Source: Takakia lepidozioides (Eukaryota > Plantae > Bryophyta). Taken from it: 64,000 nt of DNA. Below the pieces are notes generated by a model. That model searched no databases. It saw only the letters and a program-made list of their open reading frames with translations, and was not told the DNA's origin. The position numbers and the translations under genes were made by a program. The stretch lies in assembly GCA_030704615.1 (NCBI GenBank), contig CM060732.1, positions 24,180,001-24,244,000 of the forward strand, in the 5' to 3' direction. Below, in pieces: positions 20,799 to 62,525 of the stretch; the first letter of the stretch is position 1, and each line of letters begins with the position of its first letter.

Positions 20799-23700
20799 TC
20801 ATCTCGGCCTGACACTTTCAAGCAGTGTCACCTCTTTGTTAATTTGCAAACTGGTAGCCGACATACTTGACAGAGGTGCATATTGCAGCTGCAAGAGCTC
20901 ATGCTTCCTGTATCGTAGTCGTTCATCTGACAGAAAGCCAGCCCAGAAACACAACCACCCAAAGAGAAGAATCAAATTTGTTTCATCTCACACTGTTGTA
21001 CAACATTTTCCAAACCAGATCTTCAATAGCGATTTGAGCTTTATGGAGCTGACTAACAAAGGAAATCCAAATATAACCGAGGACACAAAGTGTAGACGTG
21101 GATTTTCATCTTATGATCGACAACCACAACACCGATAGTTTTGGAGATAGGGATTTCACGGCTGATGAACATACCAAGTAGTGACGTAGGTCTACTGCTG
21201 CTGCCACCACTGCTATCACTGGAGCCTGCAGTAACTTTTCCCCTGCCCGCTGGTTTTCTCAAAGACTGGGTCTTCAAAGAGGAAACAGAGAACTCCCCAG
21301 GTTTCAATCTTGCACTCCCAGTAACTCTGAAATCGTGGAACTTTTTGGCGCCAACCACATCGGCAAACTCCTTACTGGCCACATTTTGGAGAGATTTGGG
21401 CGGCTTGCCAATGCTTACAAGGTTATAGTCATTCCATATTATCACTTGAGGGTGGGCTTTGCAGAAACTGAGCACCCATTCCTTTGAAAGCAGCCAGCAG
21501 TCTGAGAGATCAAACTCTTGCAAAAGAGGAGGGGTGCTGAACTGGCACAGACCTGTATCTGAAATCACTGCACCTTGAATTCCCAGGCAAAGAAGGTTGC
21601 TGAGTGATGAGAGTGGCTGTAGACATGCATCTGACAAGAAGTTGCTGTGAAGGTATAGATGCGTGAGCTGTTTGAGGCTTGCAAGATCCTCACAACCAAT
21701 GTCTGTGATACCTGTCCTCTCCAAGTCCAGTCTCCGCAGAGCCTGCAAATGCCGCAGGTGTAACAGCACTGAAGTTTGAACCCCCTCTCCTGCTTCAATT
21801 GCCGTAGTTCCTGTAAGCGTGCAGAACAAAACAATGACTTTCTGCCTGTCCTACACTCATGATCAAATATACAGTAAAGACTATGATAAGCAGGTCTCTT
21901 CTAAAGCAGAGAGAATGACGACACTGCTCGAGTTTTTGTAAATACGAGCCTGTTTCCCATGCAGACGTTGCCCCTTCAGGATGTGAGCTCTATCTTCCAT
22001 CTCTCTTGGGAGGAAACTAATTGTCTGCGGTAGAGCTGTTAATTGGTGGACCAATGAGATTAAACTCAAGATAGCTGAGAGACGAGCCCTCTATAAAGAG
22101 TGCTGCAATTTGAAAACCAACAGAGAATTGTGGGCGAGGTACTACCAGCTCCGTAAAGATATCAATCAGCTTGTGAGGTCTCAGAAGAAATTATACTGGG
22201 ACAAGTTATACAGTGAAATAAACTCAAACCACCATGGTGGTAATGACAAGAGATTCTGGTTGGCCCTTCAACGTTTGTACAAGCCGAAAAGCGGTCAGCA
22301 AGTACAAGTGCTGAAGACTACTAAAGGTGCAGTGGTGACTTCATCGGTTGACATTGTCAAAACCTTTGAAACCCACTACAGTATCCTTGGCAGAACTTCT
22401 AGGTCTAACAGTGAGGGGTCCTCTGATGAATGGAGGGACACAGTTGGAAAAACTGTTCCTATGATTCAAAACAGCCCTGATGAACTGGAGTATATTTCAA
22501 TGGCTTATAACGCTCGCCTTAGTTCTTCTGAGATTGTGGAAGCAATTGAACATTTAAACGGATATAAAGCTGGTGGACCTGATGGCATAGTCAACGAGCT
22601 TATCAAGCACGGTGGCGATCCCATGATAGAGGCCCTAGTTCTCCTCTTTAACCTTATCTGGAAGACTGAAATGATCCCCTTTCGCTGGCGACAGGGGGTC
22701 ATTGTCAATCTATACAAGAAGGGTGACAGAGAAGAACCAGGGAACTACCGTGGCATCACGCTCCTCAATGCTGTTGGCAAGACATTTTGCAGAGTTATAA
22801 GTACTCGTCTCGAGGTTGATCTGGAATCTAGAGGTTGTTTCCACGAAGGCCAAGCTGGCTTTCGGCAAAACAGGGGCTGTGTGGATCATATCTTCACTCT
22901 AAGCCAGATTATCCAGGGAAGGAAAAAAGAAGGGAAACCCACTTATGATTTTTTCCTGGATGTCAAAAAGGCTTATGACACAGTGTGGAGAGATGGCCTA
23001 TGCCTCCGCCTCTGGTCTTGTGGGATCAAGGGAAAGATGTGGAGAGTTGTCCACAACTTGTATGCTCACACCAAAAGCTGTGCCACTGTTAATGGACAGA
23101 AGTCCAACTTCTTTGACATAGACCAAGGTGTAGCTCAAGGATGTACTCTCTCCCCTCTGCTCTTCAAGGTTTTCATCAATCAACTCCTCGAGGATGTGGA
23201 AAGTGAGGTATTTGGGTTAAGGATGGGTGATACCACCATACCAGCCCTTATGTTTATGGATGACTTCGCAGGCATAGGGGAGACTCCAACCAATCTCCAG
23301 GAGTTGATTGATTGCGCGAAGAGATACTTTGATCTTTGGGGGCTAGAGGCTAACGTCAGCAAATTGCGCAGTGGTAGCATTCAACAACAGAGGAGAGGAG
23401 GAAGTGATCTTAAGTGGCAGTGGGGTAGCCAAGAGATCCCGGTCCTCCCTTCCTACACTTAACTGGGCGTTGAGTTTTCCTCCAATTGTAATTGGGATGC
23501 ACATATCCGGAAAGTTGTTCAACCTGGCAAGGGCAAAGCTCTGGGGCTCACTAAATTTTTCCACTGCAGAGGGGTCAACTCTGAGGTTAAGAAAACCATG
23601 ATTTGTCGCGTTATTAGACCTGCCTTGGAGTACGGATCTGCAATATGGGTTGATAACTCCAACCAGGCTAAGTCTCTAGAATCCATTCAAGTGGGGGTGC

Positions 23701-26700: not shown

Positions 26701-29700
26701 CACCACTTTGAACTTCATGGCTCTCTGATTGACATTGTCCTACATAGTGCAGCAGTGATAACTATGGCACAAGGGTGAGGTTTGCATCCATTGGCTGCCA
26801 GCATAACTATGTGCCTGTTTAGTGCTATGTTCCCACAAAAAGTAACAATTACTACGGACAGATAAATGTTTGCTGCCCTCACTATCATGGAAACAGACAC
26901 TACCTTTGTGAGGTAGTGGGTGAAGGAATACATCTATAATTCTCTGTCAGTGTATAGTGTAGGATGTACTAGATTATAGATTAAGGATGTGCAGTTACAT
27001 CCAAGTCTTACATCTGAAGTGGTTAGCTGGTTGAAGTCACCAAGGAGTGTGGAACGGTACAGAGCTCAACAGTTGAGTAGATGTAGAACCACCAGACTCA
27101 GCCGAGACACAGAGAGTGCAGATCTCTCTTGTGAACACTTTCTCTCTTGATGTAAGATCTATTTAATCTAGTTCTATGTTTTACACGATTATGTGTGTGA
27201 CTGACTCTGGATAGAATAGGTGTTTTCACATGGTATCAGAGCCATGGTTGTGGCTCGGGAGAGAGAGTGTCACTAATGAGAGCGAACTAATAATTTCGAG
27301 ACACAATGAAATTAAAAGGAGTCGATAGAGTTTGGAGGAGAGAACTAACAATTCTCCACGATGCATCAGCGTGGAAGAATTCTGTTTCTTATAGAAGAAC
27401 ACAAGTTCTAACATTGCCTGAATTCTGTGATGTTCATGCTTTCTTGGAAAGTGATAATTGATTGAGAGACTGGAATGGCTCAAAGAGTAGATGTGAGCAA
27501 TATTCCTAAGTTTGACGGCACATACTTCCATGTGTGGAAGCATAGAGTAACACTACTGTTAAAAGCAGAAAAACTATGGGCTCTAGTCGTAGGGACAGAG
27601 TTAAAACCAGTGGCTCCCACGGCAGCACAGGTTGCTGTTGGGCAGCAAGCGCTTCCAGCCACAAGTGTTGGGAGTATAGTGAACTGGGAAGAGAGAGATG
27701 CCCTCTCACTCACCATAATTAATAACTGCTTGGACAATAGTGTAGCGTCACATGTACAGTCGTGTACATCAGCTTTTGAAGCATACCGAGAGTTGACAAG
27801 GTTATATGAATCAAAGGATGCAGTAACCAAAATGTATCTTAGAGATAGAATTCAAACTTTAAAAATGAAAGAGAATGAAAATGTCACTAAGCATATACAT
27901 GTCTTCAAATCTTTGCTAGAATAGCTTTCCGCTGCTGGTTCCCCTGTGTCAGACGAGGATGCTGTCTTATCCCTAATGAGGAATATGCCGATGAGTTATC
28001 GGACATTTATAGGCTCTTTTAGGAGACAGCCGAATATAAGTCTACAGTCTTTAATTACAGACTTAATACAGGAGGAAACTTTAATGATGAGTCATGGACC
28101 TGCTACAGATTCAAAAACTGCATTTTACTCTGGACAGAAGTCTAGTACATATAATAGTTTTAATAGGAAGAAGCAAAATGAGGACAAAAGTAGTGTCAAG
28201 AAGGAGGATGGCGAAGGATCAAACTCAAATAAAGGAAAGAAGAACCAAATCAAGTGCTTTTTCTGTAAGAAGTTTGGACATATGATTAAGGACTGTAGGA
28301 AGAGGATTCCAGCTGAAGCAGCAAACAAACAAGCAACACAAGGACATGTTGCAGTCGAAGGCAATCAGCTCTATGTGGCAGCGATGATCATAAGTAAAGG
28401 GAAAGATTCAACTTGGTATGTGGACACATGAGCCACACAGCACATGGCGTATGACATACACACTTTTGCGACATACAAAGAGTGGAGACAAGGTCAGGTT
28501 GTCTATTTAGGGGATGACTCAACACATGAAATAGCAGGCCAAGGGTCAGCCATTGTGTTGTTGTGCAATGGACAACGAAGGGAGGTACCTGACGTGCTCC
28601 ATGTGCCAAGTCTCAAGAAGAATTTATTTTCTGTTAAACAATTAGACCTAGCTGGGGGAGAGATGAACATAAAAGAAGGTTGCTGTAACCTGAAGAATTC
28701 CAAGGGAAATCTCATAGCAAAATGTGAGATAGAGAACGGACTCTATAAGCTAGGAACTGCATTACAAAACTCACAAGTCATGGCAATGCCAACTGTCTTA
28801 GAGACTAACAAGGCAGATCTATGGCACTGTAGATTAGGTCATATGAACCAAGCTAGAATGCATCAGATGCAAACTAACTCAATGGTTAGAGGGCTGGATT
28901 CAGTAGATGTTAGGAAACTAACATTATGTAGAGATTGCATCTCAGGAAAACAACACCAAGAGAAATTCCCTGTAGAGGGAGGCACGAGAGCTACTGAACT
29001 GTTAGGCCTCGTACATACTGACATTTGTGGACCGATGCAAACTCTCACACACAACGGGTTTAAGTATTTCATCACATTTATAGATGATCTTTCAAGGTTT
29101 ACTGTTGTTTATTTATTAAAACAAAAGTCAGAGGCATTTGAGAGGTTTAAATGGTATAAGTTACTGGTTGAAAATCAGCTAAGTAAGAAGATCAAGGTTC
29201 TAAGGGCTGATGGGGGTGGTGAATACATTTCTAATGAGTTTAATTTATTCTGTCAAGAGAGTGACATAAAGAGGCAGTTTACTATAGCAGGAACACCACA
29301 ACAGAATGGGGTGTCTGAGAGGAAAAATAGGACCTTAGTGGAAGCAGTACTTTCCATGCTACACCAGGCTAGCTTACCAAATGTCTATTGGGGTGAAGCT
29401 CTTATGACTGCCACATACCTACAGAATAGGTCACCAACCAAAGCTCTACAGAATAACAAAACACCCATAAAGTTATGGACAGGTGTGAAACCTGATGTAT
29501 CACACTTGACAGTCTTTGGCTATAGAGCCTTTGCACTAGTACATAAGGATAATAGACGCAAACTAGACTCACACACTGTCGAGTGTACATTTTTGGGCTA
29601 TAGTAAACAGACCAAGGGTTACAAATTAATGACCAAACAAAAGACAATTATCATTTCCAGAGATGTGATATTCCATGAGGATAGTAATGACACAGTGGGA

Positions 29701-30687
29701 GATGCTATAGAAGAAGAAACACAAGCAGACAAAGATTCAATGCTATTAGATTGATCTTTCTTTAAGCAGTATGCAAACACTAATAATTTACCACTTCCTC
29801 GCACTCACATAGTACCACTAAACACTCACACAAGTCCAAGTGTGCAGTTTCCTAGGCCAAGTCAAGTAGTGGGAGCACTACCATCACCACTGAGCACAGG
29901 TTCAGTTAGAGGATATAGTGAGAGAAAATACCTCACCCAACGTAGGGAGTTCAAGACAGGCTAGGAGAGCGACATCAAGCTCACTAGGAAATAGACGATC
30001 TACTAGAATCAAGAAACCACCTGATAGGTTGATTGAGAGTGTAGAAGGTAGGAAACCCTGGAGAGCACTTTTGACACAAGCTTCTGTAAATGAACTTGTT
30101 ACCTTGAAGGAGGCTTTATCTTGTTCCGAAGCGAAACAATGGAAGAATGCTATAGATTCTGAGCTGGAATCTTTAAGAAGAAACAAAACATGGACAGTCA
30201 TGAAGCTACCAGAGAATAGAAAACCTATAGGTTGTAAATGGCTGTTCAAAGTAAAACTTCGGGCAGATGGGAGTGTGGATCGCTATAAAGCAAGATTGGT
30301 AGCAAAAGGATACTCACAGATATCTGGACTAGATTATACAGAGACCTTTTCACTAGTAGTCAAATTAACATCTATACGAGTGATACTTGAGCTTGCGACT
30401 CAATTTGATTTGGAAATTCAACAACTTGATGTTAAGACTGCCTTCTTGAATGGCTTCATAGAAGAAGACATTTATATGGAGTTCCTAGAAGGAGTCATAC
30501 AAGAGAGCAAATCTGGTTTAGCTTGCAAGCTGAACAAATCACTTTACGGGCTCAAGCAATCATCACGGGCATGGTACCAAAGATTTGACACCTATTTGAT
30601 GACAATAGGGTTTGATCGAAGCGTAGCTGATTCGAACGTCTACGTGCAGCGGAAGAGCACGAGTTACCTTATTCTGGCATTATATGT

Positions 30688-30722
<35 letters not shown>

Positions 30723-33700
30723 CTCCGGCCGAGGCCGGCGTAACTAAGAGCCACTTCACCTCCACTTCACCTTGCGGCTATTGCCCCCTTTCGGAGGTGG
30801 GCCCTATTACAAAAAAGTGTCCAGGTGGACACTAGGTGATATGTTGATGATACTATATTGGCTAGCAATGATGTGAATTTCTCGCAAGAGATCAAGAAGC
30901 TCCTCGAATCTGAATTTGAAATGATGGATATGGGGGAGATCCACTACTGCCTTGGGATGCAGTTTTCAAGAAACAGGGGAGAAGGATGGATCAGATTGTT
31001 GCAAGAAAGGTATTTGCTTGGAGTGCTACAAAGATTCGAAATGGAAAATTGTAAGCCAATAAGCACCCCAATGAGACCAAGGAGAAGCTAACAAAGTCAG
31101 ATTGCCCAAAAACTGAATATGGAAAAGCTTTGATGCAAGAAGTGCCTTATTCACAAGCAGTCGGTTGTTTGATGCATGCTGTTGTCAACACCCGACTTGA
31201 TTGCTCATTTGCAATGGGTAGTCTCGCTGAATTCCTATCGAACCCCGGAGAGCCTCATTGGCAGGCAACAAAGAGGGTGATGAGGTACATAAAAGGCACT
31301 CTTCACATTGGAATTCAGTATTGTAAATCGGACAAAGGAGCAACCCTAATAGGTTTTTCAGATGCGGATTGGGCTGGAGACATAGACACTCGACATTCAA
31401 CATCGGGTTTTTGCTTCAAGCTAGCAGGTTGTGCAGTAAGCTGGTCAAGCAAAAAGCAGAGGTCCATGGCTTTGTCAAGTACTGAATCCGAATACATGGC
31501 TTTATCAAAGGCTGCAGCAAAGGTAGTGTGGCTCAGGAGTTTGATGATGGACTTGGGATTTGTTCAGAAGAAGGCTACTATAATTTATGCAGATAATCAA
31601 AGTGCAATAGCGCTATCTGCAAATCCTAAGTTTCATGCTCGTAGTAAGCATATTGACATCCAGTATCACTACATACGAGAAAAGGTCCAGTCGAAGGAAG
31701 TGACACTGGAGTACCTTCCAACATCTGAAATGATTGCTGATTTCTTGACGAAGAGCGTTCCGAAGGAGAAACGCTTTCTTTGTGCGAGAGGGGCTGGATG
31801 GAAGTGGAACAAGAAGCCAGAGCAAGATTCAGACAAGATGGAAGACACTACGTATATACTGCCAGAGTATTAGTGGGAGTGAAAGAATACATCTATAATT
31901 CTCTGTCAGTGTATAGTGTAGGATGTACTAGATTACAGATTAAGGATGTGCAGTTACATCCAAGTCTTACATCTGAAGTGGTTAGCTGGTTGAAGTCACC
32001 AAGGAGTGTGGAACGGTACAGAGCTCAACAGTTGAGTAGATGTAGAACCACCAGACTCAGCCGAGACACAGAGAGTGCAGATCTCTCTTGTGAACACTTT
32101 CTCTCTTGATGTAAGATCTATTTAATCTAGTTCTATGTTTTACACGATTATGTGTGTGATTGACTCTGGATAGAATAGGTGTTTTCACAGTGGGACTTAC
32201 CTTGGTATCCAGATATCCTCGAGAAAGCCCTTCACAAAGAGAGAGGGAGATAGAATGTACTCGAAGATGTTGTTTTCCATAGCCTTGTGGCCATCGACCC
32301 CGTGCTCGTTGTTTGCAGTAGCCTTCTGGCCATTGACCCCGCGCCCAGTTTGAGCAAAACACAAAGGGACAGAACCTACCTTTGTCAGGGGCTGACACAG
32401 GTAGTAAGACTTACCTTGGAATAAACAATTGATCTGGGTTTTCCAGATATCCTTTAGAAATCCCTTTACACAAGCATCAACCCGCTGTGTGTGGTTTGCC
32501 CAATAACTAGGCCCCAAAAGGGCCTGGGCTTTTGGGTCAGCCTCGAGACTTTCAAAGTTGGTAAACAGAGGTGCAGGCAGGCACAATTCCCTTAATAGAT
32601 TTGAAGAGAGCGTCTCTCTGGTGAGAGAACCCCAGACAATGAATCAGAAAATTAATACTGTCTTCAGGTTGCCCACACAACGGGCAATTGCACTCTCCCT
32701 TTCCTCTCTGCTTCTGTTTGCTGTTCAAAGGTAGGCTTCCCGCCTTGAGTTCAAATTTCAGTCTAGTGCCGAGAGTGGGTAGACCCTTGAGGTCATCCAT
32801 GATGTCCTCCCCCACGTCACAGACTGGAAACCAGTTCAGGGATGTTTTCTGCCTAACTTCATTTTCATCAGACAATTTCCTGGCAACAGACATGGCTCTG
32901 GACACACCAGCCTCTAAGTCATAATTATCCAGCAGGGTCAAGCCTTGCGGGCTAATTTTCAGATCCTTGAGAATCTCTTCAACTCTCTTCCGCCAGGACT
33001 CAGCCTGTTTGGCAGGGCGATCCTGCTTCCAAGATATGGAGCCGATTAACTTAGGCCATCTGATGTTGGACATATGTTGCAGCCGACCCCACCATCCGAC
33101 CTTGAATACATCTCGTCGGGAGCTTAAGGAAGGGATGCCAAACTCACCCCGAATAGCCACATTGGCTGTTATGGAGCATGCTGACAAGCACTCCTTAAGC
33201 ACCCCCACTTGAATGGATTCTAGAGACTTAGCCTTGTTGGAGTTATCCACCCATATAGCAGATGCGTACTCAAGGCAGATCTAATAACGCGACAAAGCAT
33301 GATTTTTTTGACCTCAGAGTTGATCCCTGGAAAAAATTTAGTGAGACCCAGCGCTTTGCTCATGCCAGTTTGAACAACTCTCTGAATATGTGCATCCCAA
33401 TTACATTTGGAGGAGAACTCATTGCCGAGAGAGATTTTCTAGCAAAGTTCAATATGACCCACAGGAGCTGCCCCTATCATTATGTAAACAGCTTCTCTTC
33501 ATAGTACAGACATTTGTCACCACAAAACCTGCCAGAGAAGGAATTGTATTTAAGGTCTTGCTCATGCAAACTTGATGACTAGCATCCCTCCCTTCATGTG
33601 GAAGCTGTCAAGGTAGTAGCCAAAAATGCCCAACCACCACACACTGTTTGGCTAGAGGTGGAACTGGCCAGTCAAGAAAATGGGGCCCGGGGCTCACCTC

Positions 33701-36700: not shown

Positions 36701-38947
36701 ATGATAACAGTGCTGAATTCGAAGTCATTAAGTAGAAGTATGTCTTCCGGAAGCAACACAGGCTCGGTGGGGGACACAGAGATCGCAGAGCCCAGCCCGC
36801 AGGCTATGCACGTAAATCGTCACATGGCTCCTCCACACACGTTGCAAAGTCTAATTCAGGAAGTAGATGGCAGGAAGGGAGTGGCTCAGTTTGATCTTGA
36901 CATCGTTTTGGAGTTTCGTGACATTACATATACTGTTAACAAAGGGAGACAATCTATTCGGTCCTTGATAGAGGGTATTGCTGGTCTCTGCAAGCAGTCA
37001 TTCAAGCCTGATCGGCCGTCAAGCGTGAGCCTTCTGAAAGATGTTTCTGGCAGAGCAAGAGATGGAGAAATTATGGCCGTCATGGGACCAAGTGGATCAG
37101 GAAAGTCAACTCTGATTGATGCACTTGCTCAGAGAATCTCACGAGAAAGTCTCCAAGGCAGCATCACTCTTAACGGACAGGAAGTGGACAGCCACCAGCT
37201 GCGGAATATCTCAGGTTATGTCATGCAGGATGATCTCTTGTTTCCCATGCTCACTGTGCAGGAAACACTCATGTTCTCTGCTGATGTGCGGCTACCTCCC
37301 AGCCATAGTAAAGGAGCAAAGAAAGCTAGAGTCATCAGTCTGATTCGGCAACTCGGTCTTGAGAGGGTGGCAAATACAGTCATTGGCGATGAAGGTCACA
37401 GGGGAGTATCAGGAGGCGAGCGCAGGAGAGTTTCCATTGGAGTTGATATCATTCATGGACCTCTTCTGTTGTTTTTGGATGAGCCAACGTCCGGGCTCGA
37501 TTCAACAAGTGCATACATGGTCGTCAAGACTCTCAAACACATTGCGGAGATGGGAAGCATTGTCATGATGTCTGTCCATCAACCGAGCGATCGCATTCTG
37601 GGACTTGTTGACAATGTGATCTTCCTTGCAAACGGACAGATGATATACATGGGGCACCCTAAGGATCTCACGGCCTACTTTTCCGAGTTCAATCATGGTT
37701 ATCCCATTCCATCTGCTCACGGGAATGCTACAGAGTTTGCTCTTGATCTGATACAGGTGCTCAACTCCATGCCTGACGGTATCAAACCTCTTGTAGACCG
37801 TTTTAAGTCTATGAGCAATCTGCAATTGTCTGTCTTTCATCTTCGCAGCACACCTTCCAGTCATTCCTCCATACCGACAGGCGTCGCAGGTGCCATAGCA
37901 GCCAGCATCGCCAAAGGCAGGTTGATGGCTGCACCTGGTTACGTTGAGCATTGCAACGATAGTGCGACGCTTGTCTTGAAGTTTCCAAACTCAAGGTGGC
38001 ATGAGATACGTGTCTTGACTTGGCGGTGCATTACAAACATCCGCAGAACACCAGAGCTCTTTTACACAAGATTGGCCACAGTGACAGTGTCTGGTTTCCT
38101 GTTGGCTACAATCTTCTGGCACCTCGACCACAGCCCCAAGGGCTTACAGGAGCGTCTTGGTTTCTTTGCCTTCGCCATGTCCTGCACCTACTACTCTTGC
38201 GTGGATACCCTCCCAATCTTCCTTCAGGAACGTTTCATCTTCATTCGCGAGACTACGCACAATGCCTATAGAAAGTCATCGTACGTACTAGCAAATGCAA
38301 TCATCTATGTACCTTTTCTTGCAATTTTATCACTAGCTTTTTCTTCCACTACATTTTGGGCGGTTGGATTGTCGGGTGGGACTAGCGGATTCCTCTTCTT
38401 CTTCCTTGTGATCTGGGCCTCATTCTGGGCAGGGAACTCGTTTGCAACGTTCCTCTCAGCCATCATTCCCAATGTCATTCTCGGATATACAATTGTGGTG
38501 GCAGTCCTGGCATACTTTCTTCTGTTGAGTGGCTTCTTCAGAACCAGGGACCGGATCCCTCGTTACTGGATCTGGTTCCACTATATTTCCCTCATCAAGT
38601 ACCCCTACGAAGCTGCTGTTCGTAATGAGCTCACATCAGGCACTAGTGTTTGCTATGAGCGTGCCGGTGAAATCTTGTTGGGTACGCCTCTCGGTGTTCT
38701 TGTCCCGCAGCGTACTGTGGATGGTATTTGGGAAACCCTGAGCAGGGAGCGAAACCTCCGTGGAACAGTTTACGAACATTTGAATTCATCAACCTGCATG
38801 GTCGATGGCGCTGGAGTGCTTCAGAATCAAAGCATCACGCAGCTTGGAAAGTGGTATTGTCTGGCAATCACCCTCGCCTTTGGGGCTTTCTATCGCATTC
38901 TCTTCTACATTGCGCTTCGGATCAATGCGAAGAACCGCAGGCATTAG
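36701..38947 (+). CDS. Half-size ABCG (WBC) transporter, ABCG1/2/6/16/20 clade, intronless
   Basis: 748-aa ORF with Walker A GPSGSGKST, signature VSGGERRRVSIG, Walker B LLFLDEPTSGLD and H-loop SVHQPS. Clade-type motifs ARDGEIMAV, YVMQDDLLFPMLTV, IGDEGHRG, QERLGFFAFAMS, FWAGNSF and RDRIPRYWIWFHY. Confidence 0.93.
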   Translation: MITVLNSKSLSRSMSSGSNTGSVGDTEIAEPSPQAMHVNRHMAPPHTLQSLIQEVDGRKGVAQFDLDIVLEFRDITYTVNKGRQSIRSLIEGIAGLCKQSFKPDRPSSVSLLKDVSGRARDGEIMAVMGPSGSGKSTLIDALAQRISRESLQGSITLNGQEVDSHQLRNISGYVMQDDLLFPMLTVQETLMFSADVRLPPSHSKGAKKARVISLIRQLGLERVANTVIGDEGHRGVSGGERRRVSIGVDIIHGPLLLFLDEPTSGLDSTSAYMVVKTLKHIAEMGSIVMMSVHQPSDRILGLVDNVIFLANGQMIYMGHPKDLTAYFSEFNHGYPIPSAHGNATEFALDLIQVLNSMPDGIKPLVDRFKSMSNLQLSVFHLRSTPSSHSSIPTGVAGAIAASIAKGRLMAAPGYVEHCNDSATLVLKFPNSRWHEIRVLTWRCITNIRRTPELFYTRLATVTVSGFLLATIFWHLDHSPKGLQERLGFFAFAMSCTYYSCVDTLPIFLQERFIFIRETTHNAYRKSSYVLANAIIYVPFLAILSLAFSSTTFWAVGLSGGTSGFLFFFLVIWASFWAGNSFATFLSAIIPNVILGYTIVVAVLAYFLLLSGFFRTRDRIPRYWIWFHYISLIKYPYEAAVRNELTSGTSVCYERAGEILLGTPLGVLVPQRTVDGIWETLSRERNLRGTVYEHLNSSTCMVDGAGVLQNQSITQLGKWYCLAITLAFGAFYRILFYIALRINAKNRRH

Positions 38948-42085: not shown

Positions 42086-45000
42086 TCCATGCTTAATAGC
42101 TCGGCTTCAACCTTGCTTGACTCTGGCTGCTCAGCGCGGCCTTTTGCTTCATCATCTTTCTCGGCACAAACGGGGACAGCACCAGGGTTCCACCATGGAG
42201 GTATGGCTTCTTTGTTTCACGGTTCAAATGCTTCCACACCATTACATATAGCTGTTGTTGGCTAAACCCTAGGACCCAGGATTGAACCTGGCTCTTGTAT
42301 GAAATGTTACACCAGTACTTCTAGAGCAAGTACCAATGTACTAAACAGTGTCTGAGCAAGTTAACATCTAACCAAGAGACGAAGCTCTGTGTACACCGTG
42401 ACTCAGCACTTCGGTCTCCTTAAAGTACTTTCTGATGACTTCCCCCCTTCTTCTATCAAAGCTATTCCTAGTATCTTTTCTCCTCACCAAAGCCTGTCTC
42501 TTTTCTGCTGTTTCAATCTTTGTTGCTGACCATCAACTACTTTTTCCAGCCCTGCTTTAGTTTCTAAACAGTTGTTGCTAAACTGGGCTGATTCTTCAAA
42601 AGAGTGATATCAGCCCTCTGAGCTTTAATAGGTCCGAGTTAGTTATACCTGACTTCTAGTAGGGTTACAATATGCTGCTATGCTATGGGCCTGAAAATTC
42701 TAGGCAAGGTTGTGGCAGATGCAGTTTGGCTTTAAGATGGTTCCTTGTCTAGTGTGGGTTTGGTGCCAAGGAAATTAGGTGCTCCTATCACCAATATTAG
42801 GAAGTTCTGTTTGCATTGCAGGAAGCCTTCAGGGATTGCACAACATTCCGGCAAGCTACAACGTGCAAACAGTGCCAAATGCCTTATCCTCCAGGAATTC
42901 AGGGTTGGGAGGGGGCCCTTCAACTGGAGTACATCAACCAGGTGGGAGCTTGCCCACAGGCCGCTTCACCTCCAACAACCTGACTGTCGGTCTTTCACAG
43001 GTTTCTCCTAGGACCTTGTTTCGAGTGTTACCTCGAAGAACAGTAGGGATCGTTGGCTGTGGAACAAGTAATGAAGCAGGTTGCTGTTGTTGTCAATTTT
43101 TTTGGTCTCTTTATTTGGTTTGCCTTTGGGAAAAAAAATAGGCACCTTGTTGTAGTGGACCCTAGAAGCATTTTTTGTTGCATTACTCATCTGGAAATAC
43201 ATTGAAGCTTGAAAAGTTTCAGAAGAGAACACAAAGCTTGTGGTCACACTAGACTGGGGATGGTGTGTTTTGGCAGTTGTCACATGGAGGGCTTCATGGA
43301 CACTCTGCAATGACGAGCCGTACAGGGATTAGTGTAGGAGGAAATCATGCTTTCAGCAGTAGCATGAATGGAGTGGGAGGGTCAGGTCTGGGAACATCTC
43401 CTGGTGCTAGCAGTGTGGGGAATCGCGGCACTCTTGCGGGGTTGGGAGTGACCTCATCACCAATAGGAGGTACTGGCCCTCGAATTCTAGGGTCTGTTGG
43501 GAGCATCGGAGGAGGTGGCGGAGTTAGTCTCAGTGGAGGTTCGGGCCTTACTAGAGCGCTGAATGCAGCTGGTGGGGTAACGGTTTCAAGTTTGAATGGT
43601 TCACGTGTTAATATGGGACCTCTAAGTAGTAATAGTGGTGGGATTGGTGTGCAAGGCCCGGGGCGGCCTGCAAGCTCAATGTTGCAACAAGGGCTCAACA
43701 TGTCATCGTCTACTTACAACCCCTCTGGTGATTTGCTGGCGATGATAAGTCGAGGTATGAGATCTGGTTTGCGGAATTCTTTAAAAGTTCTATTCTGGAT
43801 TGTGGCAGTTGCCTTGCAAAGTCTTCTTCTTGGTTGTTTCAGATAAAACTAGATCCTAGATCCCTTTTCCATCACTTTAACGTCCTCATTGATTTCACAT
43901 AAAGCAAGTCATTCTGTATAATGAGTTTCCATAGCTGGTTCTACTCCTCACTGGTGTAGATAGCACTTAAGGTGTAAAGGGGAACACAACATGTTAATGC
44001 TTTAGAGGCTGTGAGCAAGTGATGAGGTTTGAAACTCTCTTCATATGTATTGACTAAATTGTTTCTCTGAATTGGTGGATTTTTCAATCCTCCAATTCAC
44101 ATCAGAGATAACCTTTTTTGGATGTCACATGAACTCGTTACAAGTAGCATTTGGAATCTAATTCATGTATATTGGGAGAGGTGGAGTGTTTGATGCAGCT
44201 AGTTTCATATTTGAGCACAACCTATTTATTGCCCAAGCACTAACTTTTAAAATCAAGGCCCAATCTTGTGAGCATATCATGTCGTTTGCCATATTATGAC
44301 GCAGTTATCCTGCTTTTGTGGTCACTTTGTTGGTATTGCTTAGTTTGGTGTCACATGGCGAGTTTTTGTGTCTTAATCTGGTATTGCAGGATCGCCACAA
44401 GCTGTGTCATTGCTGGGAGGGAATTTTTCAACTTCGCCAGGCTCAGGCATCCAGAGACACGTGCCTTCAGCAAATGGCCAGCTTGGCAGTATTGGACTCA
44501 CCAGTGATGGGGGGGTGAACGATGGTATAGCTTTCGACATCAATGACTTCCCACAGCTGAGTACCCGGCAATCTGTGTCTGGAGGGCTGCAAGGACCTGC
44601 AGGTGGGATTGTCTTTTGATCCTTTGTAACTGATGTTGTGTCACTCTCTAACTGTAGTGCAAGAGCAGTAAGTTATCAATATGAAGTCGAGATTTTTTCA
44701 TTCAGGCATTTGCCTATGAGACATTGCTGTGGGATTCCCAGGAGTAGCTACACTCGCAACCGATCCATCTGCCGTGACTGCTTGCTTTGCTCGCATGTGC
44801 GCACCTTAAAGCCCTCAATCAACACATACTTAAAGATGCAATTCTTCACAGCAACCACTGTTGGATAGAGCTTGGAGGATCTTCCCTTGCTGTGCTACCC
44901 AGAATGTAACTCTACCAGGCTGGGGAAAAAGAACAGGGGGATGAACGGCACTCTGGTGATGGCCTGACCGAGTTGTGCCGATGGTGTTGTGGCAGCTGCC

Positions 45001-48000
45001 TTGAGAAAGCAAGGGGTTGCTGTGAATGCCATTGTCCAGCAAAATCAAGAGTTTAGCATACAGAATGAAGATTTTCCTGCGTTGCCTGGTTTCAAAGGTA
45101 AGCCCACCGTTTCTATCTGTACCGTTTCCTGTGCAGCACTCTAGTTTCCTCCACTTTCTCCTGTGAACCCAGTAACCGCGAAGTAAACCAGAAAGAAGAG
45201 TTTACTTAACCCGCATCAATCAATCCATGGACTAAATACATTCTTGGGATCTCACAGCAATGCTTCACCATCATCCCCTTTAATGGCCCAGGACCTGATT
45301 GCACTCATTTGATCAAAGGATGTGTTTGTGATGGTTTTGGGAGTGATCTCAATGTGGATGTACGTTTGGACATCCTCCTGAGTGGACCAGTGTTACGAAT
45401 ACTTGAGCACCTTAGATTCGTGGCAGGCATCTGCCGCTCAGGGGTTCCTGAGGCGAAATTTTCTCTTGGGTGGCTGGTGTGCACGAATCTCATCTGGCTA
45501 TGCACATTTAGCACTTGGTACTTTGTGTGCAACTTGGCAACAGGAACAACCCGTAACGATTTTCAGCCCCTGTTGGTGTCACAGCCTGTCCTGGTTTTGG
45601 ACATTCTGGTTATGAACATACTTGTGTGCATTGGCATAGACTCTCACACACACTTTAGATGCAGAAACAGAGAGATCTGAGTGAAAACTTAGTTTGCAGA
45701 TTTGTTGGTGTGGATACAGGGGGGGGTGGTGATTTACAATCTGAAATGCAACATTCTAAGGAGCAGCAACATGAGAATGCACTGGCTGCTGCTATGCAGT
45801 CCCACCATTTCACGGTACAGATTGCCTCACACCTATCAGGCTCTTGCTACATCCATGATCTGTGGAGCTCCTACTTGAGTGTAGTTCTCGAAAGCTTTGG
45901 GAGATGGGGTTGCATTCTCAGAGGAGAAGTCCTGAACTGCTGGGAAGATTGATCGACATACTCTGCAGATGTATCAGTTCTCCTGGTGAATTGTTTAATT
46001 TATATTTGCACATTATGCAGACTCTTTTGACTGTGTGACTCTTTTGGCATTTATCATCATGCGACAGTAGAGAGGCTAATCACTATTTTATTTGAAGTAT
46101 TCAACAATCCCCTTGGCAAGAACCTGCTGTGTGGAGGTCTGTCACAAATAAGGGCCCTCCATCTGCAGCTAGTTCACATGGCCAAGTTTTCACAGTTTGA
46201 CCCAACATTACGAAGTGTATTGGTAGCATTGCTGACCCGCCAGCTCCCATGGTAGATCATTTTAAGCATTTCAGTTTTGGACCTTGCCTTGCAGCATAGG
46301 TTTTGAGAGTCGACTTCTTCTGTATCTGTATGAAGAAAGTAAAAGTCCATACTCCTCAACTCCTATGCATCACATCAAGTATGATGTTTGGATTGGAGTC
46401 AGTTAGAACATGTGGATGTCTGATCACCAGTATCGGGAGTTATAGTCCTGAAGGCCAACTTCTAGGAGGTCTATGGAGGTGAGTCTAAAGAATGTTAGGA
46501 GTGGGGATCTGTTTTGTTGGTGTTCTTTGGTTTAAGTCTAGACGGTCACATGAAATTCAGTGCAGATGGGGAGGTCTGCTGGATTTTCTCTGGGAGGGTA
46601 TGTCCCGCACCGGCAATTGCAGCAACAGCGGGCAGCCATGATGGCTTCAGGATCGATGGCATCTGCAAATGCCTCTGATCTGGAGCCCTTGCATGCCAGT
46701 GTCTCCGATTCCTTCCCTTCATCACATGGTCTCTCAGCTTCTTACCATTCTCAGGTAAGGCAGCTACATAATACTGGTGCTGAGTACAATTCCACAGAAC
46801 AGTTGTCACTATTACCACCAAATGTAACACGTTGTCACGTTTCCGGTTTGCTGGTTTGCACCACCTATCTGTGAATGTCCCTATTCAACCTCTTTTGCCA
46901 CATTCCTGGCTGTCACAAGAATATTGGAGCAATTATGGACCTGTGGGTAAGGCAGTCAGTGATTGAGTTGATGGCTTGAGCCACTTCCATCCAGTTGTCT
47001 TCCTTGTATTGTTATACTTTCAGGAAACTTTGAAATCACTTCAAACTCTGTTCCTCTAGTTTGTGTCATTATTGTGGCGTTCATGTGGGTAGTGGATCCC
47101 TCAGTGGATAGCTTCTAGGTGGTTCTTTGTATACGCTGGGATAGGAGGTCACATACATGTTGCTTTCCGAGCTGTGTATTGGAACTCATTTAGGAGGAAC
47201 TCTCCCCTACCATGGCAGTGTGATTATAGACGGGCTCATGGTGACGGTTGCCTACCTGGAAGTGAAAAAGTGATTTCTTACATACATTTTAGTCTGTACG
47301 TTTTGTACCACATGTATTTGAGTGGCTTGCCAACCTGGTACAAGCATTGGGAATTTTTAGTATGTTAATGTAGGACTCATCTTGGATTCACAAACACCCG
47401 TCGTCTGTTTAGTTACGATAGAATTTCAATGAGATAAAAATCTCTCAAGGATCTTTGCTTGGTGGCTGGTAAAGGCAGGGATGAGCCAGCATACAGTGGT
47501 TGGTAGTGCTGTCCTCTCTGATTATTTTCTTAGGTGGCACACTGAGGTTTCTTACTGTTTCTTATTCGTGTTCTGGCAGTTTCAACAATGATTGACAATA
47601 GTTGCATATTTTTGTCCCTTTGAGTTGTATGATATCCTTATTTTCTCTTAACATGCATTGGGGCCTCATTATAAATGGACAGGTGCAGGCAGTAGGCCCG
47701 CCTGGGGCTGGGGGAGGGCATACACATCGGTCAGGTGGAGGGGCTGGGGCAACTGGAGGGTTGGGGTCATACGACCAGCTGGTGCACCATTACCAGCAAC
47801 TGAGAGGGGTGGGTCATCAGCAGCAGCAATTGGGACAGTTGGCAAGAGAGTCCTTGAAGTTGGCACAGCAGGGAGGAGTGGCAGCTGCGCCAGACCGGTT
47901 TGGATTGCTAGGTTTGCTAAGTGTTATCAGGATGAGCGACCCAGACCTGACTACACTAGCATTGGGGACTGATCTCACTACTTTAGGACTAAACCTTAAC

Positions 48001-49903
48001 TCAAGAGAAAACTTGTACAAAATGTTTGCTTCTCCATGGGCTGAGGGCCCCACCCGGGGTGAGCCAGAGTTCACACTGCCGCAGTGCTATGTCCAACAAG
48101 CCCCCCTATTGCAGGTATACTCTTGTTTACATGTGGCCTCACCTACAGATTAGGGTGCATGTGGGGTAGGCTTCCTTGCTTGGTGGGAATACACATTGTG
48201 GTTTATTTACTTCTGTTAGTGTTATCCATCTTGCAAACATATAACAGGAATATTACTTTTTTGCCGTCAACTGCCCCCCTCCGACCCCCTGGAGGACATG
48301 TGAGGGATGTGTACAACGAGGTGAGCTTGATGTTGCATTAGCCCACATGATTGGATGTGCTGAAAGAGACTACAGTTCCATTAAGGAACCCTTAGACAAG
48401 ATCCTCTCAGAACTTGGGAGAGCTTTTTATCTACATGTGTTGGAGGTGGAAACGTGAGAAAGGAACCTGGCATGTTGTGCATCAAATCCCAGGTGTGCCA
48501 ATGTGTGGAGAGTGATAGAGGTTTGGGTTACAACAGACAGACAACTCTCGGAACACATTGAAACTTGTTTATGAGCTTCACTTTAGTTCTTTGACTTCAA
48601 TTTTTTTCTTCTCCTTCCGAAGTGGCAAGTGCTGTTAACACTCAGTGCTTATACCCACAAGATATCATTTCACAGCTCCAAATTCTATCTGTTTGAGGCC
48701 CTCTTTCTTATTGATGGTGCTGTTTCTCATGGTTTCTGCAGCCCGGCTATTTCACAAAGTTTCAGCAAGATACTTTATTTTACATATTTTACAGGTGATA
48801 ATCAATTCCTTTCATGTGTTGGTGCTCCTATCTCTATGCCTGCTTATTCTTACCCTTGTATAATCCACAGAATGACCTGTTATCTTACCTGACATCAATC
48901 GTATCCTGTAGTGTTGCGTCCATGTATTGATTGTCAGGTAAATCAGCAGCAGCAAATATGTCACAGGCATATTCTTTTTATTGCAGTGCATTTTGTTAGT
49001 GCCTAGATGTTCCGGTTTAGATGGTCGGATAAGCAGTGTCGGTATCTTAATACAGTGTTAAATAACCTGATATTGATTGATTCAGGTTAGTACAGTACAG
49101 TGTGACAGTGCTAGAAGAGCTGGGTTCTTTAAAGGCTTAACCATCCTGCTGTTGTTTTGGTTACTGTGCAGCATGCCCAACGACGAGTCTCAACTGTATG
49201 CTGCTGATGAGTTGTAAGTAGCAGCTTCTCTGCATTTGCTTATTCCCGGGAAGTGGTGGTTCTCTATCTTTCAACTGTGTGTTCTGGATTTTATTTTGTG
49301 AGCTTACTTCAGAATTACTTACTCAGAGGTGTCATACTGACTTCGTGTCATTGCCATGGGACTGCAGGTGCAGCAGAGGGTGGTTCTACCACAAAGAATA
49401 CAAGCTGTGGCTGACTCGGGTTCCCAACATGGAACCAGTGGTCAAGACAAACACGTATGAGCGGGGCTCATACTACGTTTTTGATCAGAGCACGTGGGAA
49501 ACTGTTCGGAAGGTATTCCCTTTGTCCGATATTATGGACTACTTGTGATATTTTTCAGTGTAACCCCCTTGTGCCTTCTTGGACTAGTCTCTCAGGTCTT
49601 GCTTTATCAGCCTACAGTGTTACCAGTGAATGCATGTACCTCCTCTCATCTTTCCCAATGTTAGACAAATTTGGTTGGTATCGCTATGTCTTGGAACAGG
49701 AATCCATAAGCATTGTGACTGTTTAGTGACGGGGTTAGAACTGGTGCCTAGTAATCAGTGAATGGAAGAGTTCGGAGGTGTAGCGGAAAGCAGCTAAAGT
49801 AACCTCTGTGATGATGTTGGGGTGGGGTGGGGGACCACAGGATAACTTTCTGTTGCATTATGAGCTGGTGGAGAAAAGACCACAATTGCCCTCTCAGCAC
49901 TAA
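42086..49903 (+). CDS. NOT2: CCR4-NOT subunit NOT2/VIP2. Exons 42086-42200, 42822-43000, 43277-43754, 44390-44602, 44996-45097, 45720-45814, 46566-46754, 47683-48114, 48742-48794, 49172-49213, 49368-49512, 49841-49903; possible first micro-exon MSNLLATKS from 41185
   Basis: GT-AG junctions with consistent phases. Peptides LQGLHNI, GRFTSNNL, FDINDFPQL, QQNQEFSIQNEDFPALPG, DRFGLLGLLSVIRMSDPDLTTLALGTDLTTLGLNLNS and the NOT box TLFYIFYSMP..RGWFYHKE..YERGSY..KDNFLLHYE. The start exon is uncertain. Confidence 0.93.
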
Positions 49904-58100: not shown

Positions 58101-58889
58101 CGCTGTCGTTTTGCAAATTGAGGGTCTGTGGATCCCCTGTGGGTTCTTTCATACCAGCCGAGCTTTCCGATTTCGATGTGAGATTAAGAAGGTGCACAAT
58201 TCAGAAGACTTCTCTGTGTGATTCGATCATCTGCATTGAAGGAAAAATATCCATTCAAGGGGAAGTTTGGGCCCAGTTTGGGTTTCGGAAGCTGCAGCAG
58301 GCCCTAGCGGCGACCAGTGTAATGGTCCGCATGACATGAACTTAGATTGTTCAATCAGATTGTGCAAGCAACGTTGCCACCACCACAGTTCTCTTTCTGT
58401 GCCGGCATATCTCTCTCTCCATGTTGCTAGGCAGCAGTGGCAGTTACAGGCCGCCCACAGATTCACTCGAGTTGCATAGGTTCCCGAGAAAATCTACATC
58501 TTCCGAGAAAATCTACATCATGTGATAAACTTGGCCATCATCCGCCAACTTCTATCCGCCTTCATTGTAGTTGCAAAAGCCAAAACTGCACCGTGCTCAG
58601 ATCACGGATGAAAGCCATCCTTTCATGCTCGAAGCCCTTCACCCCACTTGGGCTGCGAAAGCCTGAAATTGGTGCCTTCAGAGAAGAAAGGCAGAAAAGG
58701 AAGGGACCCAACAATCGCTCAGGTCAGATGGGTAGCGGAAAAATGTTTGTGGTTGTAGAGATCCCCAGGAAGCAAACTTTTACCAGTCGGCCATCTGCTG
58801 GAAGCTGGAGGTGCATAGTCATAATTTCTGCAATGGGCTTGCTCCAAGCCAGCACAAAGGACGTTGGTTTCCTGTACTCCGCTCCGCTC

Positions 58890-59292
58890 CCTTGTTGCTC
58901 CCCGCTTACAGAGTTGGAATGGCAGCCGCCACTTTCCTCAACGCGCAGGTAGAGGCCATACCAAAAGCCGCGTACTGTTCTTGTGGTGAATGGGCGGAAG
59001 GGCTGACATCTCGCAGCAGATTGGCCGGCCACCATGTGGAGCTGGAATGCGTATCCAACTTGGGCCCGAGACCCTTGCTGCACCGCTGCCTTGTTGCTTC
59101 CCGCTCATAGAAGTGGGATGGCAGCGTGCTCCGCCCCTCTCCGCAGCGCGCAGGTGGAGGCCATACCCAGGACCCCGTCTTCTTCTTGTGGTGAATGGGC
59201 GGAAGGGCTGATATCTTGCAGCAGATTGGCGGGCCAGCATGTGGAGCTGGAATGCGTATCCAACTTGGCAATCCCAGGCCCGAGACCCTTGC
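58890..59292 (+). repeat. Tandem ~200-bp duplication of the first coding exon of the PPR gene
   Basis: Units 58890-59078 and 59089-59292 both encode MAA..AQVEAIP..SCGEWAEGL.S.SRLAG.HVELECVSNL..GPRPL, in different frames. Confidence 0.9.
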
Positions 59293-62200
59293 AAGTGATG
59301 GCTGTGACGCCTACCGTGCCTCCAAGGAAATCGAAGAAAGGTATTGATTGATATGCAACACTTCTCAGATTTTTTGGGTTTCCCAAATCGGTGCTTTGGA
59401 GCGATCCAGGCTTCATTGTCCTTCTCTCACTTCTCCTCTGATATATAATTTTATTTTTACCGGAGCGAGTTTAAGAGAAATGAAATGAAATGGTACTTTA
59501 TGGAGAGAGAGAGAGAGAGAGAGAGGAGAGCAAGTTGTAAGAATAACATCCTGGTGGAGGCAATTGGAAGCTAACAAACTTCTCATATTCGTCCAGTTTT
59601 TGCGCGCAGATCAAGGAATGAGCATAGAACGGCTCTGGCAGGAGTTCTTCTCAGATCCCTCACAGTGGTGGGATAACAGGTCTGCAAAGGTGAGCATTTC
59701 TTTATTATTGAGAGAGTTGGTCAAGGAGGGCTTGTCACTGCAGCTGAGCGGATTGGACCTCCAAGTCCTTAGGTGATTGCCAGTTCTGCTCTGTTTTTAG
59801 TGAACAACAGCAAAAGCGAATTATCAAAAGGTTAGCAGTGTCTGCAAGTAGGGAGTTCTTCCTTGGTTTCTGAAAGTGACTTTTAGCTTGGGTGGTTATA
59901 GCCTGCTCTATGCAATGCTGGTGCTGAAGCTATGGCTGCTGAGCTGTCCACTTGTCGATTTCACAGATAAGCCCGAGATCACCAGACTTCAGGCACAAAG
60001 AAACAAAGGAGGTCCTTTGGGTCGAGAGTTTGTTGAACCCGCCTTGGGTGAAAGCAGAGCTAGATGCCATGACAGGAGGTCGAGTACAATCTGGTGATAG
60101 TTCTGATGTCATTGTACAGGATGGAGCTCCAAGCGGAGAATACAATGGGTATTGTTTTCTTGATGATGATGATTGCAGTACATGTCTGCACTAGTCTTGG
60201 AACTTTGCCTCCTAAGTAGAATTCTCTTGGCAGTATCCAGAAGCTTTATGTGAGGGTGAGTTAATGCATCTAACTTGCATCTAACTTGCATCATGCAGGA
60301 CTGGACGGTTTAATCAGTCACAATTCTTTGTCAGACATTATACTGGTGGCAGGGTTAACACATCTGCCATCACAACTGCTTTTGAAAGAGGACCAAGAGA
60401 AGGAGTAAACTATAGCTCTTCTGACCCTAGTGGGGACCCAAGGACACCAATGGAGAGGATGCACATTTTGAATCTACGGGGCATTCGGGCAGATTTCCAT
60501 ACTTATGTCTGTCTGCTGCAGGAGTGTATCAACATGAAAGACCTAGCAGAAGGAAAGCAGCTGCACGCCCATATAATGCAAAGTGGATTCAAGCCAAACG
60601 TTTTTTTACTGAACTGCTTTATCAACATGTATGCGAAATGCGGGAGCCTTCTGGATGCACGCAAAGTATTTGACAAAATGCCTGAACGAACTTTGTCTAC
60701 TTGGAACATAATGATAGCAGGATATTCCAAGCGGGGGTATGGTAGGGAGGCTTTAAAAATATATGAGCAAATGCAACAGGAAGGGGTGACACCCAATAGG
60801 GTCACCTTCATTTGCACTGTCAATGCATGTGCCAGCTTAGGAATCCTGGAAAAGGGCAACAAGGTCCATGCTGATGTCATTAAAGCTGGAATTGTGTCGT
60901 ATATTAATTTGGACACTGCCCTTGTTGACATGTATGCCAAATGCGGGAGTGTGAATGATGCTCGTCAAGTATTTGACAACATGTCTGAACGAAATGTGGT
61001 CTCATGGAATGCCATGATCACAGGATACACTCAGCGTGGGTGTGGCATGGAGGCTTTTGAGATATATGAGCGAATGCAACAGGAAGGAGTGAAGCCTGAC
61101 AGGGTCACTTTCATTTGCGTTGTCAATGCACGTGCCAGCATTGGAGGCCTGGAAAAGGCCAAAGAGGTACATGCTGACATGATCAAAGCTGGAATCGCAC
61201 CAGACCTTGTTCTGCAGACTGCCCTTGCAGACATGTATTGCAAATGTGGGAGCATGAAGGATGCACGTGAAGTGTTTGATGGTATGGCTGAACGAAATGT
61301 CATCTCATGGAGTGCGATGATTGCAGGATATGCTCAGCATGGGTGTAGTAGGGAGGCTTTCGAGATGTATGAGCAAATGCAACTGGAAGGGGTGACACCT
61401 AACAGGGTCACATTCATTGCCATTCTCAATGCATGTTCCAGCCAAGGAGCCCTGGAAAAGGGCAAAGAGGTCCATGTTGACATTGTCAAAGCTGGAACTG
61501 CACCAGATATCATTCTAGAGACAGCCCTTGCTGACATGTATGCCAAATGTGGGAGCATGAAGGATGCGCGTCGAGTATTCAATAATATGGGTAATCGAAA
61601 TGTCATCTCATGGACTGCCATTATCAAAGGATATGGCCAGCATGGATGCGGTTGGGAGGCCCTGCAACTATTTGAACAGATGCAACTGGAAGGTTCGAAG
61701 CCGGACAGTATTACGTTCATGTCCCTTCTCTCCGCCTGCAGCCATGGAGGCCTAGTGGATGAAGGCCATCACTACTTTCATTCCATGTGTCGAGATCATG
61801 GTCTCACCCCTACAGTGGAGCATTTTAACTGCATGGTGGACCTTCTTGGCCGTGCAGGGCGATTGGATGAGGCAGAGGACCTCATTAACAAAATGCCACT
61901 CAAACCAGATGCAGGGGTGTGGAGAGCCTTGCTTAGTGCATGCAGAATCTATGGCGATGTGAAATTAGCAGAACACGCAGCAAAATCCCTTCTCAAGAGT
62001 GATCCACAGCAGGCTGGAGCTTATGTGCTGCTATCAAACATCTATGCTGCAGCTGGCAGGTGGGATGATAAAGCAAAGGTGAGAAAAATGATGGAGGACA
62101 GACATATCCAAAAGGAGCCAGGGCGCAGTTGCATTGAGATTGACAACAAGATACATACATTCATTGTTGAAGATAAATTGCATCCACAAATTGAGGAAAT

Positions 62201-62525
62201 CCATGCTGAGCTGGAGAGATTGTTTGGGCATATGAAGGAGGCCGGGTATGTGCCTGACACACGCTTTGTGTTACATGATTTGGAGGAGGAGCAGAAGGAA
62301 TTTTCTCTCTGCCACCACAGTGAGAAGCTGGCCATTGCTTTTGGCCTCATCAGCATGCCCCCTGGGGCAACTATCCGTGTCATCAAGAACCTTCGCGTGT
62401 GTGGTGACTGCCACACGGCCACCAAATTCATCTCAAAGATTGTTGGGCGGGCAGTTGTACTACGGGACGCCAACCGCTTTCACCACTTTCAAGATGGGGT
62501 TTGTTCTTGTGGGGATTACTGGTGA
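59118..62525 (+). CDS. PLS-class PPR-E-DYW RNA-editing factor with an N-terminal OSB-type PDF motif (predicted 903 aa). Exons 59118-59340, 59610-59689, 59967-60148, 60299-62525
   Basis: The last exon holds 14 PLS repeats, E1/E2, a PG box, HSEKLA, CGDCH and a terminal DYW. The upstream exons join by GT-AG in phases 1, 0 and 2 with no stop, and encode LWQEFFSDPSQWWDNRSAK-ISPRSPDFRHKETKEVLWVESLLNPPWV. Confidence 0.85.
59503..59525. repeat. (GA)n microsatellite in the first intron of the PPR gene
   Basis: Visible dinucleotide run. Confidence 0.85.

Follow-up and report, generated by a model that had tools for sequence, protein, structure and literature searches.

A 64,000-nucleotide stretch of the genome of the moss Takakia lepidozioides (contig CM060732.1, positions 24,180,001 to 24,244,000 of the forward strand; hereafter the window, in whose own numbering positions are given) contains, at 59118-62525 of its forward strand, a four-exon gene that joins the PDF motif of OSB proteins to a PLS-class PPR array ending in a DYW cytidine deaminase domain. 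We read it, with a probability of roughly 0.6, as a nuclear gene for an organellar, site-specific C-to-U RNA editor in which the PDF motif would act as a sequence-independent accessory grip on single strands. The PDF motif is a 50-residue element of OSB proteins, and that of AtOSB1 suffices on its own for binding of single-stranded DNA (ssDNA) (PMC6963530). PLS-DYW proteins edit organellar RNA, and their repeats follow the target in the 5'-to-3' direction (PMC13041630). The PDF motif has been described as OSB-specific and PPR-DYW proteins as repeats plus deaminase; here both are joined in more than 100 proteins, and the Takakia gene apparently belongs to a PDF-PLS(-E-DYW) subfamily that has so far gone undescribed.

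The gene model had been proposed in a first-pass annotation made from the DNA letters. Its exon coordinates, GT..AG intron ends, phases (1, 0, 2) and stop-free join were all confirmed in the sequence, where four exons with a summed length of 2712 nt join in frame into a predicted 903-aa product, the introns splitting a GAT (D) and a GGG (G) codon and the frame staying open until the stop at 62523. Exon 1 (59118-59340; 223 nt, 74 codons, start uncertain) ends in phase 1 at the donor AAG/GTATTG (the slash marks the splice site) and is followed by intron 1 (59341-59609; 269 nt, phase 1), with a CTAAC word at 59571. The first half of the PDF motif, starting at 59633, lies in exon 2 (59610-59689; 80 nt), and intron 2 (59690-59966; 277 nt, phase 0) splits the motif. 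Its second half occupies exon 3 (59967-60148; 182 nt) to about 60062, where a linker begins. Intron 3 (60149-60298; 150 nt, phase 2) is the PDF-to-PPR junction, with boundaries GG/GTATTG..ATCATGCAG and two CTAAC words inside, so that branch-point-like words stand upstream of acceptors 1 and 3. Exon 4 (60299-62525; 2227 nt) holds the remainder of the linker (60299-60494), the PPR array, the E1 and E2 motifs and the DYW domain. The introns are T-richer than the exons (31-36% T) and have a GC content of 40-46%, against 47-60% in exons. In the frame of exon 4 a stop lies upstream at 60282 and the first ATG comes only at 60450, within the linker; the first 50 codons of this exon are therefore usable through splicing only, and a program calling open reading frames (ORFs) would take that ATG and miss the fusion, as had been anticipated. 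All searches, alignments, trees and fold predictions reported here used single exons or natural proteins.

The motif on exons 2 and 3 is the PDF of OSB proteins. A phmmer search with exon 3 found 186 relatives, including Populus OSB1 and a Riccia protein with SSB and PDF, and the two exons jointly cover the 51-position profile built from them (positions 2-20 in exon 2 and 22-51 in exon 3). They were also the sole matches in a six-frame profile scan of the whole window (E 5.7e-8 and 1.7e-13). Since exon 3 was the seed query and exon 2 was not, the match of exon 2 is independent support. A chance motif was rejected. Pfam has no PDF model, and the small exons yielded nothing meaningful there. The start of exon 4 was considered separately as a decayed second PDF, for which DNA alignment gave no support.

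Across 144 motifs attached to PPR proteins, the core positions (W, D, R, K, PDF, H, LW, P and W) reach 94-100% conservation, roughly equal to or above that in motifs outside PPR proteins, and the Takakia copy keeps every core residue. Against homologues, exon 2 gave pS of 0.44-0.89 and pN of 0.16-0.40, and exon 3 pS of 0.78-0.94 and pN of 0.23-0.39. Judged from these substitution rates the PDF exons are under long-term purifying selection, which does not in itself prove that the copy in the window is active at present. Three proteins without PPR (P0121, P0124 and P0126) carry up to 13 PDF repeats, and the motif can accordingly build long arrays.

The suspicion that this gene might represent a family was well founded, and a singleton can be rejected. 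When PDF regions of natural fusion proteins served as queries, at least 127 proteins combining PDF and PPR were found, a tally that contains clusters and a few isoforms and is no census. Among the matches listed, 52 have a DYW domain and 75 are without one as annotated, some of the latter possibly being truncated annotations. The same matches comprise 71 from Diphasiastrum complanatum, 32 from Sphagnum, three from Calypogeia fissa, one from Adiantum and 20 others; every species-named protein among them comes from a seed-free plant (liverwort, moss, lycophyte or fern), and in all of them the PDF, in one to three copies, is N-terminal to the repeats. A structure search of the ESM Atlas added an SSB cluster as well as three clusters of PPR/DYW proteins with 57-127 members, and on a Logan contig three PDFs without interruptions share a single ORF with a PPR array. 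A literature search, from which most subscription papers were missing, found no paper on PDF-PPR proteins and only OSB reviews for PDF, OSB and PPR together. A 2026 OSB survey demanded both PDF and OB fold and leaves PPR unmentioned (PMC13393729), and PDF has 0 occurrences in a kingdom-wide 2026 survey of editing factors that does list fusions of domains (PMC13386178). The combination was probably overlooked because Pfam lacks the motif and surveys required an OB fold (PMC13393729).

Exon structure supports the proposed fusion, the splicing being conserved in relatives. A phase-1 intron precedes the PDF exon at the same place in PDF-PPR genes of Sphagnum, Diphasiastrum and Adiantum and in the Riccia OSB gene, and four PDF-PPR genes, like the Riccia OSB gene, have a phase-0 intron at the corresponding point of the motif. 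The 80-nt exon running from phase 1 to phase 0 is common to L001 (Sphagnum), L005 (Adiantum) and L006 and L007 (Diphasiastrum). Both Diphasiastrum genes combine this exon with the full set of phases (1, 0 and 2), which provides homologous support for the fusion junction; in L006 the PDF-to-PPR intron is of phase 2 and reads GG/GTATGG..ATCATGCAG, nearly the donor and acceptor of the window. Two phases are shared with Sphagnum and Adiantum, and an equivalent of intron 3 is missing from Sphagnum L001. The annotated 3' half of the Adiantum gene (L005, GOP47_0023879) is divided by splicing into numerous short exons and appears mis-annotated or decayed.

As a rival explanation, PPR exons of a genuine editor might have landed behind OSB-derived leader exons that supplied a promoter and a targeting peptide, the PDF being a passenger with no role in editing. 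Seed-free PPR genes do spread mainly by retroposition (PMC13386178), and Physcomitrium PPR56 functions without such a module (PMC10482289). The linker part of exon 3 weakly resembles Diphasiastrum PDF-PPR linkers, and exon 4 begins with sequence similar to the N-terminal region of a PDF-less PPR-DYW protein, P0095 (E 6e-5). Two supported PDF clades appear in a quick tree built from the C-terminal part, one of Sphagnum, Calypogeia and one Diphasiastrum protein and the other a Diphasiastrum expansion, and the DYW domain of the window groups with neither. A single fusion origin as one clade was not rejected in this quick tree (p-AU 0.16); a second tree left out long-branch rows and near-duplicates. 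We nevertheless consider the passenger explanation rather unlikely. The core columns are conserved across liverwort, moss, lycophyte and fern, the motif often occurs in arrays of two to three, and pS lies far above pN, whereas a dispensable passenger would be expected to decay.

The editor half of the gene lies on exon 4, where Pfam places PPR, E_motif and DYW_deaminase above their cut-offs, and the motif parse resolves 14 PLS-class PPR motifs at 60495-61910 (Pfam PPR_2, E 1.2e-80) in the order L-S-P-L-S-P-L-S-P-L-S-P2-L2-S2. E1 and E2 follow at 61911-62114, E2 keeping Val5/Lys34, and the DYW domain at 62118-62525 (E 6.9e-44), with HSE at 62316-62324 and CxxC at 62400-62411. Aligned to 9kfx, 7w86 and 7o4e, and without gaps to the synthetic PPR-DYW 9kfx, this domain retains HSE, CxxC, the second zinc site, the DYW end and the lysine preceding the PG box. 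The roles of these residues are known from earlier work (PMC7611903; PMC10482289). A PLS-DYW protein with HSE and CxxC, as first annotated, is thus borne out by Pfam, motif parse and alignment. The domain had also been called intact, which holds for HSE, CxxC and both zinc sites but not for the PG box: its P, G, S and I are present, and its conserved Trp is Cys (62130-62132). That column has W in 56 of 59 other DYW proteins and C in none. By its residues the domain is of the PG, C-to-U type; a KP-type U-to-C editor was rejected, as the PG-box residues are present.

Eight of the nine P and S motifs have canonical pairs at residues 5 and last in the code of PMC10482289. The target predicted from the PPR code is 5'-n(C/U)YnAUnAAnAGnU-nnn-C-3', with about 10 specified bases. 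The ninth pair is N/T, which we take to lean to C. Three S-P-L triplets at 60600-61508 are 73-80% identical in DNA, which suggests that the array grew by internal duplication of such triplets.

The gene model is weakest at its 5' end. The start at 59118 is uncertain, with an in-frame ATG at 59034 and several further ATGs upstream, and exon 1 sits within a tandem duplication of about 200 nt (58881-59268, copies 83-88% identical). The upstream copy (58881-59063) contains a 64-codon ORF that begins at 58917 and stops at 59110, just ahead of the proposed start, and is possibly an upstream ORF or a non-coding leader. Comparison of the tandem copies revealed no synonymous excess in any frame and so does not support coding constraint on the exon 1 region, and exon 1 has no homologue among the proteins fetched for this analysis. 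The transit-peptide-like character that the first-pass annotation had seen is only moderate: S, A and P make up 12% each and the segment is also R-rich, yet it contains five Glu and its start is uncertain. Exon 1 may be regarded as a putative organellar targeting peptide or low-complexity leader.

Such irregularities lend some weight to a less favorable explanation, in which the copy in the window is decaying, the full fusion is not expressed or the enzyme is impaired. The fusion could fail through a retained intron 3, which would meet a stop at 60192 and leave a PDF-only peptide, or through exon 4 being translated alone from 60450. The 5' tandem duplication with its upstream ATGs, the PG-box change, an Arg in place of Cys in one of the L motifs and the absence of a polyadenylation word in the sequence searched downstream of the gene all point this way. 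On the other hand, 904 codons are free of stops and every splice site is intact. The PDF core, Val5/Lys34 of E2 and all zinc ligands, catalytic as well as structural, are kept, and junction 3 agrees with Diphasiastrum in both phase and splice-site sequence. We regard decay or impairment as unlikely, if a more serious concern than a mere passenger.

PPR repeats place the cytidine four bases past S2 in the active site of the DYW domain. If the protein is an editor of this kind, its PDF would lie at the 5' end of the bound RNA, at least 17 bases upstream of the edited C and separated from the array by a linker of about 95 residues. The conserved Trp/Phe and Lys/Arg/His residues of the motif would hold a single strand independently of its sequence, and could strengthen binding through avidity, or hold open the upstream transcript or a neighboring nucleoid single strand. 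In this arrangement the PDF would be accessory and would not switch the substrate of the deaminase to DNA. Its position far upstream of the edited C on a long linker favors a grip or tether over a device that sets the substrate, and so does its presence on many PLS proteins without DYW. Takakia has 2,016 PPR genes (PMC13386178) and massive editing (PMC10482289).

What the grip would hold is a separate matter. The DNA ancestry of the motif favors a tether to the nucleoid, and its PPR and DYW partners favor RNA. Granted an editor, we lean toward the PDF gripping the RNA itself, though with less than even confidence; tethering to nucleoid ssDNA or R-loops is possible and clearly behind it, and a service in protein interaction or stabilization seems slightly less probable still. 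The first-pass annotation had proposed a tether to nucleoid ssDNA or transcription bubbles for co-transcriptional editing, which is plausible among other roles. The broader proposal that a large and ancient class of editors in seed-free plants docks on nucleoid ssDNA or R-loops through a module taken over from ssDNA-recombination proteins, and so couples editing to transcription in lineages without MORF cofactors, with PPR-guided deamination of DNA as its extreme, is in our opinion doubtful.

Relatives of the module point to this DNA ancestry. AlphaFold predicts the PDF alone as a compact helix, three short strands and a helix (pLDDT 91.6), and in a model of a Sphagnum PDF-PPR-DYW protein it forms an ordered domain ahead of the repeats; it is confidently predicted to fold as an independent unit. 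Comparison with PDB sequences and searches with Foldseek PDB, BFVD and VIA-align (best Z 3.2) gave no match, which does not by itself prove a new fold. The Atlas structure search led to phage clusters (TM 0.65-0.70) and one Rad52 cluster. Four phage genes end in a PDF-like motif, 47-56% identical over 34-43 aa (L008:2090-2686, L009:551-1099, L010:2051-2605 and L011:2246-2653). At the three loci whose neighbors were scanned (L008, L010 and L011) the gene is flanked by a PD-(D/E)XK nuclease on one side and a DnaB-like helicase on the other; an AEP primase comes next in L008 and L010. This slot is usually held by an SSB or annealing protein. Pfam gave no match for the two of these phage proteins that were tested, tblastn of a PDF against annotated phages was blank, and so was a first GTDB scan.

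In bacteria, at least 120 loci, mostly of Gemmatimonadota, have the PDF core within a four-cysteine zinc ribbon and lack the flanking helices; they were found with a DNA pattern designed after the Atlas lead and requiring the cysteine variant, and are not an unbiased census. All six of the longer bacterial proteins tested belong to the Rad52/22 family. Among Gemmatimonadota loci L012-L091 (e.g., L013:2287-3159 and L035:256-1080), the core sits C-terminally on Rad52/22-family proteins, and in others near the N-terminus of proteins of about 170 aa with further zinc-ribbon matches. Outside PPR proteins the module is, as far as gene context tells, a companion of ssDNA handling. The literature search returned no paper linking the PDF to phage or bacterial relatives.

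These relatives invite the more speculative alternative that had been floated, a natural sequence-guided ssDNA cytidine deaminase, with organellar ssDNA held by the PDF and read by the PPR array for the DYW domain to deaminate its dC. Besides the phage replication modules and Rad52-family proteins, it can draw on ssDNA binding by the OSB1 PDF (PMC6963530), on a designed PPR protein that binds ssDNA via the same code (5orq; PMC13041630) and on a bacterial DYW-like deaminase reported to act on DNA (PMC11789416). Much more stands in its way. The affinity of PPR proteins for ssDNA is impaired (PMC13041630), the DYW:PG domain is an ordinary one that can be aligned over its full length with RNA editors, the repeats obey the RNA code, and the PDF is at the opposite end from the active site. 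Moreover, 75 of the 127 (59%) PDF-PPR matches listed are without DYW as annotated, and efficient DNA editing would presumably erase the editing sites that abound in these lineages. Support for the idea is weak, and we consider it very improbable.

An RNA editor with an accessory PDF has its own difficulties. The phage and bacterial relatives of the motif all occur in DNA contexts, RNA binding by a PDF is undocumented in the accessible literature, and nucleic-acid binding by a PPR-attached PDF would be an extrapolation from AtOSB1; the net charge of the window's motif is 0. The joining of PDF and PPR exons in this gene is predicted from sequence and homologous genes, and the copy might be weakened or decaying, given the PG-box change and the disturbed 5' region. 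In addition, moss PPR56 is active as an editor in Escherichia coli although no more than 14 native residues precede its first PPR (PMC10482289); an accessory module is accordingly not a general requirement.

The family is a test case for whether and how editing is tied to the nucleoid. Only seed plants have MORF cofactors (PMC13386178), and complementarity between PDF-PPR proteins in seed-free plants and MORF in seed plants is a lead rather than a test. The family is equally a test case for what editors use where MORF is missing. The phage and bacterial relatives point to the source of the module, and a folded single-strand-binding module of 50 residues could improve designer PPR editors.

Elsewhere in the window, LINE-like reverse transcriptase ORFs were recognized by eye in three related copies, two of them broken (8309-10543, 22110-24593 and 32552-33250), as was a Ty1/copia-like element in pieces (gag, integrase, reverse transcriptase and RNase H; 27475-31873). 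An intronless ORF at 36701-38947 encodes a 748-aa ABCG-type half transporter, whose exact sequence was absent from the protein collection searched; an exact look-up of the exon 4 ORF was likewise blank. Exon fragments of Mediator 25-like, leucine-rich-repeat and NOT2-like genes were also seen by eye at 2369-3409, 21053-26684 (reverse strand) and 43265-48153, and introns of the leucine-rich-repeat gene appear to contain a LINE copy.

Compared with known systems, the protein is closest in its editor half to DYW:PG editors such as Physcomitrium PPR56 and PPR65, Arabidopsis OTP86 and the synthetic PPR-DYW 9kfx. It shares with them E1, E2, the P, G, S and I of the PG box, the HxE and CxxC zinc site, the second zinc site, the DYW end and canonical code residues, and with PPR56 an array of 14 PLS motifs ending in P2-L2-S2. 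Unlike them, it has a PDF on two extra exons before the repeats and a Cys in place of the PG-box Trp. With OSB proteins (AtOSB1-4/pTAC9 and Riccia R1flu_021735) it has in common a complete PDF motif and, as in Riccia, phase-1 and phase-0 introns, but its PDF is N-terminal of a PPR array whereas that of OSB proteins is C-terminal of an OB fold. No Pfam match to an OB/SSB fold was found in the upstream frames tested, exon 1 consisting of 74 low-complexity residues, and membership in the OSB family was rejected, as a protein without this fold falls outside the definition of PMC13393729. RRM-PPR, MORF-PPR and ORRM1 fusions likewise have an extra nucleic-acid or protein-binding module on a PPR/DYW protein (PMC13386178); they use MORF, RRM and OZ domains, whereas the PDF derives from DNA metabolism. 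The phage and Gemmatimonadota Rad52/22 proteins share a PDF-like motif in a context of DNA replication or recombination, and have neither PPR nor deaminase. The same domain order is found in PDF-PLS(-E-DYW) proteins, as yet unnamed, from Diphasiastrum, Sphagnum, Calypogeia and Adiantum, although the linker of about 95 aa in the Takakia protein compares with about 10-16 aa in Sphagnum and Calypogeia and 45-58 aa in most Diphasiastrum proteins.

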